IMG/VR virus record: IMGVR_UViG_3300042868_005134
Span: 248,001-312,000 of that record
DNA length: 64,000 bases
Reading direction: 5' to 3' (one strand)
Made by a program: the position numbers and the translations under genes. Below are positions 3,996 through 23,452 of this stretch, piece by piece (the first letter of the stretch is position 1; every line of letters begins with the position of its first letter). Under the pieces are notes generated by a model that worked only from the letters and a program-made list of their open reading frames with translations, was not told the origin of the DNA and made no database searches.

Positions 3996-4224
3996 CTTCT
4001 TTCTCTTTCTTAAATTCATTGTACGAAGTAGTAATACTATCCCATACTGCCCACTTAAACAACCAAGACAACAAGGATGTTAAACCTAATACTAGCAATA
4101 AAGCACCAATAATTCCAGGTAGTAGAAATCCTATAATAACAGAAGTCATAGCAATAACATAAACCTTTTGCCAAGGTTTCCATTTACTCCATTGCCATAC
4201 TACAAAATTGTAAACGTCTTTCAA
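3973..4224 (-). CDS. hypothetical membrane protein
   Basis: two hydrophobic segments. Confidence 0.7.
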   Translation of the reverse strand: MKDVYNFVVWQWSKWKPWQKVYVIAMTSVIIGFLLPGIIGALLLVLGLTSLLSWLFKWAVWDSITTSYNEFKKEKEDGQDKNQ

Positions 4225-20487: not shown

Positions 20488-22908
20488 TTAGAATCGGAAA
20501 GCTGATCTAATTCGTTTAAGAATTTCGTCGTCTTCGGATTTAACATCTTCGAAAGTTGACCTATCAACATTGGGAGCACCTGCTGAAATTGGACCTGAAG
20601 ATGGCCTTGTTCTGCTCCTATCTCTGGCATCGCCTTGAGCTTTAATTAATGCCGCAGCCGCTTCTGGATATGCTGGATCCCCAGGGTTTACGACCTTACC
20701 ATTGAATGTGATAGGACCATCTGGTTTGCCCATTCGTAAAGTACCATCTACAGATTGTTTAGATTGAGTACTTGTACTTGTGTTTGTACTTGTTCCGCTT
20801 GTACTTGCGGGTACGCCAGCTGCCGGACTTGCTGCCTGATTGCTAGTACTAGCTGCAGCCACTTTATCTAATCCTTTTAACGCACTTTCTAATCGTGTTT
20901 TTAGTTCAGGAGGTAACTGAGCCATCATGTCAGTATTTTTCTGATATTGTAATATTACAGCCATGTGCTTCTTGATAAGTTCTTGATCAGCAGGATCCAT
21001 CGAAGGAAGTTCATCGTCCTTGAATGTATCATACAAAGCCTTGCCCACATCGTATGCGGTCCATGCTGCCATGCCTGCTCCTACTATCAGTGCCGCAGGC
21101 CCAGCCAACGCAGAGGCTCCAGCCCGCGCCGCAATTTTCCTGCCAATACCCGAGGCCCCGCCCAGCTTGCTGGTAAACTTAGCTAACTTACCTGGTGCAG
21201 TAGGCGACCCAGATCGGCCTCCTAGTCCAAAAGGATCATTGGCGCGACTAAGAGCAGGATTAGGGTTTCGAGCCATTGCCATTCTAGCTTGTGTGCCAGC
21301 ATCACGTACTCGACCGCCTGAATTGGGCGGCACATATATGTCTGCTTCAACTAGTAGACTCCAAATCTCCATTTGTTCTTGTAATGTAAAATTAGAAATA
21401 TTTTCTAGAACTAGCGCATCGTCAGGATGTATACTTTCTGATTTGATTTTATTTTTTGCGAGAATGGCTTCGATTGCCTTGATTGAATTTTCTAATTCTG
21501 TAGTATTAGTTGTGTTTACTTTAGATCCTGCGCTTTGACCTGCACCAGCTGTAGGTTTTGCTCCACCCACTGGATTACCAGTCTTAGGATCATACCCTAA
21601 CGCAGTCATTCTTTTAACAAACTCTGGGTTTCCTAAACTTACTGTACCGGGGCCTTGACCCGGCTTAACATTATAGGCATAAGCCAATCCTGCAATGTTT
21701 GCGTACTCGTCTGTACTAACCTTGCCGCTTAAACTTCTAATAGCCGCTGTAGTTAATGGACCGTCTTTTCCATCTAAATCTAACTTTTGTCCGTGTTTTG
21801 TATTTAGGTAGTGCTGTATAGCTTTAGTTCCAGGATTGGCCGGTCCTACTTTACCTGCTGCAGGACTTGCGGATTGTCCACCTGGTTTTGTAGTACTCCC
21901 TGCTGCGTTAGCAGACATGGCTTTACCTAGTTCAGCATCGGTACGATCTACATTATCACCGTATTCTTTTTCTCGAGCCGCCTGTGCGTTAGCAGACATG
22001 GCTTTACCTAGTTCAGCATCGGTACGATCTACATTATCACCGTATTCTTTTTCTCGAGCCGCCTGTGCGTTAGCAGACATGGCTTTACCCAGTTCAGCGT
22101 CATCTCTATCTGCTTGATTAGGATCAACTTTTTGACCAGTTGGCGCTGCCAGTTTATCCACGGCCTTTTGTGCGGCACCTAATGCTTGTATAACAGCTGG
22201 ATCATCTATATCTGCCAGTTCTGCCATTAACGATTTAATTTCAGCAACTTCACTTTGATACTTACCCGCTGTTACACCTGTTGCTGGATTTCTAACAGGT
22301 TCGCCTGTGCCCAGTGTCACTTTTTCGTACAACTCATAGCTAAAACTTTCAACTAGTGTACGGGATATAGATCCGTCGAATGAAATAGACTCCATAGTGC
22401 TGCCACTAATCTTGGCCACTAGGTCATTTAATCTTTTTAATCTAGGAGCAACAAACGCATCACTGCTTTGTTTACCCTGTACATTGGCACTTTGTTGTTT
22501 TACAGCACTTGATGCTTTGTCGTTGGCAGCTTGCGAATCTTTGTCTAGGCCAAATTTACCTGTACCTATTAAGCCACCTAGTGCTGAAGTCTTTGCTGTA
22601 CCTGGTACTAATCCTAGTTTTGCCAATGATTGTGTATCAGCTTCTCTTGCTGTTGCGGAAATGTCATAGTTACTCTGCCCACGATCGCCCGATGGCATAC
22701 TCTGTTTTCTAACAAAGTATCCGCTTACAGGATCATACAGACCGGGCAGGTTTTCCTTCCATGCTAGGTCGTTTAAAATACCAGCACGTTTTTGTTCGTC
22801 TTTTTCTTGGCCAACAGCAGCCTGTATGTCTTTCATAGTTATGGCTTCATTTAAAATCTGTCTAGATTCAATCTTGTCCATTCTAGCTATAAGTGCTTTC
22901 AAGTCCAT
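20488..22908 (-). CDS. large low-complexity probable virion/ejection protein with peptidoglycan-binding-like domain and 27-aa repeat
   Basis: AIQHYLN...LDGKDGPLTTAAI (PG-binding-like); hydrophobic GAxLAGPAALIVGAG stretch; many hydrophobic-x-E sites. Confidence 0.7.
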   Translation of the reverse strand: MDLKALIARMDKIESRQILNEAITMKDIQAAVGQEKDEQKRAGILNDLAWKENLPGLYDPVSGYFVRKQSMPSGDRGQSNYDISATAREADTQSLAKLGLVPGTAKTSALGGLIGTGKFGLDKDSQAANDKASSAVKQQSANVQGKQSSDAFVAPRLKRLNDLVAKISGSTMESISFDGSISRTLVESFSYELYEKVTLGTGEPVRNPATGVTAGKYQSEVAEIKSLMAELADIDDPAVIQALGAAQKAVDKLAAPTGQKVDPNQADRDDAELGKAMSANAQAAREKEYGDNVDRTDAELGKAMSANAQAAREKEYGDNVDRTDAELGKAMSANAAGSTTKPGGQSASPAAGKVGPANPGTKAIQHYLNTKHGQKLDLDGKDGPLTTAAIRSLSGKVSTDEYANIAGLAYAYNVKPGQGPGTVSLGNPEFVKRMTALGYDPKTGNPVGGAKPTAGAGQSAGSKVNTTNTTELENSIKAIEAILAKNKIKSESIHPDDALVLENISNFTLQEQMEIWSLLVEADIYVPPNSGGRVRDAGTQARMAMARNPNPALSRANDPFGLGGRSGSPTAPGKLAKFTSKLGGASGIGRKIAARAGASALAGPAALIVGAGMAAWTAYDVGKALYDTFKDDELPSMDPADQELIKKHMAVILQYQKNTDMMAQLPPELKTRLESALKGLDKVAAASTSNQAASPAAGVPASTSGTSTNTSTSTQSKQSVDGTLRMGKPDGPITFNGKVVNPGDPAYPEAAAALIKAQGDARDRSRTRPSSGPISAGAPNVDRSTFEDVKSEDDEILKRIRSAFRF
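21904..22098 (-). repeat. 81-bp in-frame tandem repeat, about 2.4 copies
   Basis: tgcgttagcagacatggc starts at 21904, 21985, 22066; encodes DRTDAELGKAMSANAQAAREKEYGDNV. Confidence 0.9.
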
Positions 22909-22930
22909 ATCAATTCCTAATAATATACAT

Positions 22931-23026
22931 GCTCACTTCTAGTGTGCCTTCCGGGGCACGACTCCCAAACACTCTAGGGCAGCAGCCGCCCCACACCAGT
23001 AACGCATAACGTCCTAAGGTAGTGTG
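22931..23026 (-). ncRNA. candidate structured RNA element (unassigned)
   Basis: 96-nt intergenic stretch, 56/96 GC, three consecutive stems, ends about 22 nt before ATG 22908. Confidence 0.45.
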
Positions 23027-23452
23027 TTACTTGGGCACACAGTTTGGAACTGTCTTGCCACCTTTTTTCTTTGTACCTACAGGCTTGTAGCCTTTCCAAC
23101 AAGGATTGTCCTTGGGATCTTTTAATCCTTCGATTACCTTGCTTGCTAATTTTGTTGCTTTCTGTTTAGTTCGATCCGCACTTTCGGCAAATTCTTGCTC
23201 AACAGTTTTAAAATACTTACCAATCATGCTGGGCTTTGCGCCCACTGCCACATTCAATACTGGACTAGTAACAGTTTCTCTTGCTACTGGTTTGCTATGA
23301 TACACAGCAATACTTTCTGCTTGCGTCAATCGATTTGAAGGGCCTTGCCCTTCTTTAATTACAGATACAAAACGTTTCATATCGTTAACGCCAACTACCG
23401 CAGGTTTTGAATCCACGCGGTCCAGCGTTTGTAGAATTTTCTTCATGTCCAT
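23027..23452 (-). CDS. probable head-internal protein
   Basis: C-terminal PCWKGYKPVGTKKKGGKTVPNCVPK module; IKE/G, FAE/S, VIE/G sites. Confidence 0.6.
   Translation of the reverse strand: MDMKKILQTLDRVDSKPAVVGVNDMKRFVSVIKEGQGPSNRLTQAESIAVYHSKPVARETVTSPVLNVAVGAKPSMIGKYFKTVEQEFAESADRTKQKATKLASKVIEGLKDPKDNPCWKGYKPVGTKKKGGKTVPNCVPK

Follow-up and report, generated by a model that had tools for sequence, protein, structure and literature searches.

A conserved structured RNA motif with a predicted pseudoknot in uncultured lake-water jumbo phages

A GC-rich intergenic region on the minus strand of a 64,000-nt stretch of viral DNA (hereafter the window, positions 248,001 to 312,000 of the 383,411-bp IMG/VR record IMGVR_UViG_3300042868_005134) was found to hold one copy of a strongly conserved RNA structure, which occurs once per genome in over a hundred uncultured lake-water jumbo phages and matches no catalogued RNA family. 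About 126-128 distinct homologs from viral contigs show strong covariation in four helices, three loops and the 3' tail are almost invariant, and the middle loop is predicted to pair with the tail, which would give an H-type pseudoknot. The genomic context fits the tail of the upstream message and not a switch for the gene that follows.

The region had been described in an earlier note as a multi-stem element, and this observation is confirmed here, since the sequence and the stems are present and the element is conserved far beyond chance. The interpretation given in that note is only partly supported: a genuine, conserved phage RNA motif that is neither a tRNA nor a simple terminator was correctly proposed, and so probably was the pseudoknot, but a leader controlling the 806-aa "virion protein" is not supported.

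Identification of the element and its homologs

The element lies between a 141-aa ORF and an 806-aa ORF that starts 118 nt after the end of the former (Table 1). Its GC content is 0.58, compared to 0.41 in both flanks and in the whole window. No tRNA or tmRNA gene was detected in the window with ARAGORN, and no terminator-like or sigma70-like site was identified on the minus strand at the motif. The minimum free energy of the gene-strand RNA (-32.9 kcal/mol) was no better than the mean of dinucleotide shuffles (-34.7 kcal/mol; z = +0.46, and z = +0.34 in a second test), and therefore the case rests on the comparison with homologs and not on folding energy. The opposite strand (window 22909-23030, plus strand) did fold better than shuffles (z = -2.33, 2 of 200 shuffles as good). 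This was not tested across the family, and the result is discounted because wobble usage, gene orientation and the tail pairing favor the gene strand (see below).

To test whether the element belongs to a described RNA family, which the earlier note had named as an outcome that would overturn its proposal, the 4,227 models of Rfam 15 were searched. No family matched anywhere in the window at the gathering threshold, a local scan at E up to 10 gave only a chance HIV_GSL3 hit outside the motif, and ten diverse copies searched at E up to 5 gave no hit on the motif.

The same note had held that a lack of conserved, covarying homologs would count against the element. Homologous regions were collected, first by searching viral contigs with the 806-aa protein and without any nucleotide pattern. 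This gave 16 loci. Loci whose protein is only 63-70% identical carry the intergenic element with two or three substitutions, whereas more distant loci (54-58% identity over the N-terminus) have a different upstream gene but a recognizably homologous element, and two loci lack it. Three pattern scans based on the conserved blocks then gave 50, at least 119 and 23 viral loci, which hold about 126-128 distinct versions (individual loci are referred to below by L numbers). Because the search patterns demanded some of the conserved blocks, part of the invariance within each set is by ascertainment, but each block was nonetheless conserved in the sets that did not demand it. The conservation of the motif is far above that of the neighboring genes: the DNA polymerases of these loci are 56-100% identical (median 67%), and the roughly 35 invariant nucleotides of the motif are therefore under strong selection.

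A covariance model was built from 23 minimal forms. It found exactly one hit in each of 100 loci (907 kb searched), including the window copy, which was not in the seed, at 32.7 bits and E = 6e-7. The window copy was also the only hit in the whole 383-kb genome, so that a repeated element could be excluded.

Table 1. Features of the motif and its surroundings in the window. Coordinates are those of the window and all features are on the minus strand.
Feature	Position	Sequence or remark	Support
Upstream ORF, 141 aa	23452-23027		
C-terminus of the 141-aa ORF	23034-23105	...DNPCWKGYKPVGTKKKGGKTVPNCVPK	
Upstream stop codon	23027-23029	UAA, directly abutting the motif	
Whole motif	23026-22930		
P1, 5' strand	23020-23026	CACACUA	MFE fold; all 5 pairs of helix 1 have changes on both sides (CG/AU/UA/GC swaps)
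L1, enclosed by P1	23011-23019	CCUUAGGAC	Invariant or nearly invariant columns in 128 distinct copies; also conserved in copies collected without requiring it in the pattern
Optional P2 insert	22999-23010	Weak 3-bp hairpin ACG/CGU; 5' strand 23012-23010 overlaps the AC of L1, 3' strand 23004-23002	Absent from 32 minimal forms of 80-84 nt; ACG/CGU becomes ACC/GGU in relatives
P1, 3' strand	22992-22998	UGGUGUG	G to A in L004/L006 turns a G-U pair into A-U
P3 hairpin	22977-22991	4-bp stem GGGC/GCCC	99.3% of cells paired; GC, CG and AU swaps at three of the four pairs; 15-mer expected 0.04 times per window
L3, loop of P3	22987-22981	GGCUGCU (7 nt)	Invariant
L3 plus its closing pair	22979-22987	CGGCUGCUG	Invariant
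P4, 5' strand (outer helix of the third hairpin)	22970-22976	UAGAGUG	Pairs with 22946-22940 with one A.A mismatch; all four pairs of helix 3 covary
P5 hairpin	22954-22966	GGG-AGUCGUG-CCC; loop L5 is a minority variant of the consensus AUUCGCUAC	All three pairs of helix 4 covary, 93.1% paired; AGUCGUG also in L018/L036/L044 and L187
P4, 3' strand	22940-22946	CACACUA	As for the P4 5' strand
3' tail	22930-22939	GAAGUGAGCA	AGU(G)AGC complementary to GCUGCU of L3
AT-rich spacer, outside the motif	22906-22929	AGGA (22918-22915), ATG (22908-22906); sequence after the tail AUGUAUAUUAUU	Conservation stops after GAGCA in all alignments
Downstream ORF, 806 aa	22908-20488	No Pfam or PHROG match	
dsbA-like gene	20024-19758	86 aa	PF11126, phrog_639
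95-aa ORF	19758-19471		
Family-B DNA polymerase gene	19439-16734		

Covariation-supported fold and the predicted pseudoknot

The core of the motif is about 65 nt and copies reach 80-109 nt with inserts. Many copies carry the extra P2 hairpin within P1. P3 swaps freely between GGGC/GCCC, GGCC/GGCC, GCCC/GGGC, CGCC/GGCG and AGGC/GCCU, P4 is of variable sequence, and P5 closes the loop AUUCGCUAC. In the model alignment 89.8% of cells formed standard pairs, compared to 54.5% in column shuffles (0 of 500 reached the observed value) and 35-47% when the 3' partners were slid by 1-3 columns. The covariation score was 0.806, compared to 0.22 in shuffles and at most 0.15 with slid partners. Changes on both sides were observed in 15 of 16 pairs, but this measure is uninformative against column shuffles (14.6 pairs; 315 of 500 reached the observed value), while slid partners gave 5-9 pairs. 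The alignment was fitted to the model, which inflates these figures somewhat, but the margin is large. Of the two competing 3' hairpins in the earlier note, the family keeps the one given there as the alternative (P5) and does not support GUGCC/GGCAC, and the outer helix P4 had been missed. In the window copy the 5' strand of P1 and the 3' strand of P4 are the same heptamer, so that the 3' strand of P1 and the 5' strand of P4 could swap partners. This is not seen in most relatives (L004 has CACACUU).

The pairing of GCU with AGC suggested in the earlier note is supported and extends to six pairs. RNAalifold, run on the plain MAFFT alignment, predicted that GCUGCU of L3 pairs with AGU(G)AGC of the tail. 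P3, the first stem of such a pseudoknot, is supported by covariation (Table 1). For the second stem 99.2% of cells were paired, but both halves are almost invariant and standard covariation statistics are silent, so that these counts do not settle whether the helix forms. The informative cases are the rare variants of L3. All 112 distinct versions with GGCUGCU keep the tail AGUGAGC. Of the 11 versions with GGCUACU, two have AGUAGC (six perfect pairs), two AGUGGC (six pairs, one G-U), three AGUGUAGC, three the unchanged AGUGAGC (G-U becomes A-U) and one AGUGUGC (one pair lost), so that eight have changed tails and most of those still pair. Two versions with GGCUUCU have an unchanged tail, which gives a U.U mismatch. 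The pseudoknot is therefore taken as likely but not proven. It would make P3 and the loop-tail helix a classical H-type pseudoknot, with P4-P5 inserted in the long loop and two or three A's in front of the second strand.

To determine whether the motif acts as RNA, and on which strand, wobble pairs were counted. In the helices 70 G-U/U-G cells were found against 34 A-C/C-A cells, and all conserved neighboring genes lie on the same strand as the motif. Lake metatranscriptome libraries contain the region. One 542-nt contig runs from the upstream gene through the motif into the downstream gene, and a high-depth contig of another phage matches only the conserved 5' half. These contigs show presence, but not RNA ends, strand or the absence of DNA. 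A role of the motif as DNA, such as a replication origin or a single-strand initiation signal whose hairpins form in displaced single-stranded DNA, would agree with its single copy and its position next to promoters and near replication genes, and structured single-strand origins with several hairpins exist in other phages and plasmids. However, this reading is considered very unlikely, as the wobble usage favors the gene strand, pseudoknot-type tail pairing is typical of RNA, no GC-skew inflection was found at the site and the sequence is present in RNA libraries. In addition, T4-type origins consist of a promoter plus an unwinding element and not of structured hairpins.

Genomic context and distribution

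An ORF of at least 80 codons ends next to the motif in 101 of 126 versions. In 76 of these the stop lies 7-17 nt before CUUAGGAC, that is 0-6 nt before P1, and in 20 the stop is the UAG inside L1 itself. The stops fall in all three frames (39/34/22), and the in-frame continuation meets another stop inside the motif in 80 of 101 loci, which rules out a readthrough or frameshift signal. Upstream genes vary and include a ferritin/Dps-like protein in 36 loci and proteins ending in the CWKGYKPVG...VPNCV motif, as in the window. The DNA encoding this C-terminal peptide in the window is 78-82% identical to hypothetical genes of the Synechococcus myophages S-CAM1, S-BM3 and Sf-CH11. The same peptide motif ends several proteins of unrelated length upstream of the RNA motif in other loci, and occurs internally in L023.

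Downstream, NATAAATA, the T4-type late-promoter word, was found within 60 nt in 36 of 126 versions, compared to 0.7% of background windows. The word, (N)ATAAATA in T4 and cyanomyophages, lies 0-27 nt after the tail (0-16 nt in all but one), and in 11 versions it starts at the base after GAGC, so that the tail DNA overlaps the late promoter region. A further 24 versions have a sigma70-like promoter (TTGAC-N16-19-TAnnnT) followed by a ribosome-binding site. In these 60 of 126 versions the downstream transcripts would not contain the motif. In L142 (2293-2393, minus strand) a canonical intrinsic terminator (GCCCC-UUUC-GGGGC followed by UUUUU) lies 13 nt after the tail, and in this phage the motif is therefore inside the 3' UTR of the upstream transcript. 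Tight spacing to the stop codon and the promoter could, however, simply reflect genome compaction.

Within 5 kb downstream, 92 of 126 versions have the 86-aa gene that matches Phage_DsbA (PF11126, 25.4 bits against a cut-off of 25) and phrog_639, and 62 of 126 have the family-B DNA polymerase. In the window the 806-aa gene is inserted between the motif and these genes. A mobile element was rejected, because the position is syntenic and the motif is single-copy. The order dsbA-like gene, 95-aa ORF and DNA polymerase in the window is similar to that in Sinorhizobium phage Phosso (DNA binding protein, 95-aa hypothetical, DNA polymerase), which lacks the RNA motif.

These data argue against a ligand-sensing riboswitch or a protein-bound translational operator of the following gene, as proposed in the earlier note for the 806-aa gene. 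The loop conservation and the predicted pseudoknot with an embedded hairpin do resemble riboswitch aptamers such as preQ1-II, and in the window and some relatives the tail lies only 10-30 nt before the ribosome-binding site of the next ORF. However, the downstream genes are heterogeneous (the 806-aa family, dsbA-like genes and others), the 806-aa gene is absent from most loci, there is no promoter upstream of the motif, where an ORF ends instead, promoters often follow it, the tail does not overlap any ribosome-binding site and there is no terminator-type expression platform. A riboswitch or operator is thus regarded as improbable, although ligand binding and protein binding were not tested. 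The window copy has no recognizable promoter between the motif and the ORF and is here also physically the 5' leader of the 806-aa gene, so that a cis effect on that gene cannot be excluded. As the 806-aa protein also has a poor Atlas model in addition to lacking a family match, its designation as a virion protein has no basis.

A generic 3'-end element without a specific partner, such as a stack of hairpins acting as a barrier to 3'-to-5' exonucleases, a processing site, an unusual terminator or an insulator between transcription units, would fit the position after the stop codon and before promoters and the GC-rich sequence in an AT-rich genome. By eye, an estimated quarter to a third of copies are followed by a run of U, which was not counted. 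This possibility is nevertheless considered unlikely. Barriers and terminators do not need about 35 invariant loop and tail nucleotides held across phages whose DNA polymerases are only 56-67% identical, there is no consistent U-tract, L142 has its own terminator, and the motif is single-copy, whereas terminators and REP-like elements recur many times per genome. A simple terminator, which had likewise been named in advance as an identity that would refute the element, is not what is found at the window copy.

The DNA polymerase encoded in the window is closest to those of Sinorhizobium phage Phosso (47%), Agrobacterium phage Atu_ph07 (45%) and the Rak2-like Escherichia coli jumbo phages (43%). 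The covariance model found nothing in the whole genomes of Phosso and Atu_ph07, the nearest cultured relatives, nor in MaAM05, and blastn against 50,697 cultured phage records gave one chance hit inside a CDS. To test for a host-derived sequence or attachment site, one genome for each of about 185,000 prokaryote species was scanned with two patterns, which gave 0 and 1 hits. The single hit (L198, NZ_JBBAKG010000001.1, motif at about 4110-4200, minus strand) is on a phage-like 183-kb contig of a Haliscomenobacter MAG with the phage gene order: motif, sigma70-like promoter, dsbA-like gene and a 933-aa ORF at the position of the DNA polymerase, which was not searched. It is probably a jumbo-phage contig binned into the MAG, and so a weak hint at a Bacteroidota host. 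Here the upstream ORF runs into the motif and stops at a UAG in the P2 loop. DNA runs that contain the phage are all lake-water metagenomes.

Interpretation and comparison with known RNAs

The motif is, with high confidence, one member of a previously uncatalogued family of structured RNAs, specific to an uncultured clade of lake-water T4-like jumbo phages, with one copy per genome. The fold, except for the pseudoknot, is shown by covariation, whereas the way the RNA is made is inferred from context and its mode of action is a proposal for which no direct evidence on RNA ends, stability or a partner was obtained. In this view, the RNA is transcribed on the gene strand as the 3' end of the upstream gene's message, starting a few bases after the stop codon and ending just before the promoter or ribosome-binding site of the next unit, usually upstream of the dsbA-like/DNA-polymerase module. 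Hairpin P1 presents L1, hairpin P3 carries the invariant loop GGCUGCU, the composite hairpin P4-P5 presents AUUCGCUAC (AGUCGUG in the window), and the tail AAAGUGAGCA would pair back onto the P3 loop to form a pseudoknot that encloses P4-P5. The core would be a self-contained RNA module, survive as a stable 3'-terminal or excised small RNA and use its three invariant loops to bind a conserved partner, which could be a phage or host protein or an RNA. Invariant loops on variable helices, the single copy and the predicted pseudoknot argue for a specific tertiary fold with a specific partner or chemistry and against a generic hairpin barrier. A probability of about 0.9 is given to the structural family and roughly 0.35-0.45 to the mechanism, and the explanation as a whole (about 0.45) is tentative.

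A new class of small self-cleaving ribozyme is an alternative, which would cut the polycistronic transcript at the boundary between the upstream gene and the next unit, for instance at the 5' edge of the motif next to the conserved (G)AAC, and give the upstream mRNA a defined end just past its stop codon. The compact core with a predicted pseudoknot, the invariant nucleotides concentrated in loops and tail, the intergenic sense-strand location and the position where one message should end and another begin agree with this, and small ribozymes with pseudoknots (twister, pistol, hatchet, HDV-like) occur in phage and metagenome intergenic regions. The pistol P1 loop (UUAGGG...) resembles L1 (UUAGGAC) and pairs downstream. 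However, no ribozyme model in Rfam showed similarity even at E up to 5-10, L1 has no conserved complementary partner in the motif, by inspection and without a tool test the helix order does not fit the HDV-like topology, and new ribozyme classes are rare among orphan motifs. The RNA-library contig that runs uncut through the motif is weak evidence against cleavage, which was not assayed. A ribozyme is therefore thought unlikely. That the motif is the first representative of a new functional RNA class, either a self-cleaving ribozyme or a ligand- or protein-sensing aptamer, with which jumbo phages would set the boundary of the transcription unit in front of their replication genes, is likewise improbable but not excluded.

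The motif is like the orphan structured RNA motifs from metagenomes and phages (Weinberg et al., 2017, PMC5737381; the 10,006 candidates from IMG/VR and RNA viruses of Fremin et al., 2023, PMC10690425) in that it was found only by comparative analysis of uncultured viral contigs and has covarying helices, conserved loops and no known function. Literature searches by sequence strings and by topic found no description of the motif, although it may be listed as one of the unnamed "DNAVirus_N" candidates of the latter survey, which was not checked; its text describes candidates upstream of gp20 and gp32, not this context. The motif is rated as a new RNA class of unknown function. The T4 gene 32 translational operator, for which no Rfam model exists either (PMC10690425), is an H-type pseudoknot in an intergenic region of the replication gene block of a T4-like phage. 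That operator lies in the 5' leader of gene 32 and nucleates gp32 binding on an unstructured tract, whereas the present motif follows a stop codon, often precedes promoters, is not located directly upstream of a gp32 gene but is flanked by dsbA-like, DNA polymerase and unrelated genes, and is larger, with three hairpins and invariant loops. The predicted topology is also like that of the preQ1-II riboswitch, in which a hairpin loop pairs with a 3' tail, an extra hairpin sits in between and an A-rich stretch precedes the tail strand, but there is no sequence or model match, the tail holds no Shine-Dalgarno sequence and no consistent downstream gene was observed.

Structured RNAs with this much invariant sequence and covariation have often turned out to be riboswitches, ribozymes or parts of ribonucleoproteins. 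The motif is confined to an uncultured lineage of 200-400-kb T4-like lake phages and sits at a fixed place next to the replication module. If its partner or chemistry can be found, it would add an RNA component to jumbo-phage biology, where almost all known regulation is protein-based, and a compact 65-nt pseudoknot fold for structural study. The covariance model is, in practice, a specific marker for this phage clade in lake metagenomes and metatranscriptomes.

Base-pairing partners for L1 and L5 were also sought by eye (L1 with L5, with the tail and with the 3' strand of P4), as were anticodon-loop, T-loop, CsrA-site and Shine-Dalgarno resemblances, and none was conserved enough to claim. 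The invariant CGGCUGCUG is the exact complement of nucleotides 519-527 (CAGCAGCCG) of the 530 loop of E. coli 16S rRNA, but a 9-mer match of this kind has roughly a 1-in-5 chance and may be coincidence. Two versions, L147 (6135-6243, plus strand) and L130 (2443-2550, plus strand), carry a long insert in which CCUAAGG pairs perfectly with the normally unpaired L1, CCUUAGG. In L130, L1 is CCUUGGG, which still pairs through a G-U. This suggests that L1 is built to base-pair with a (U)CCUAAGG-like sequence.
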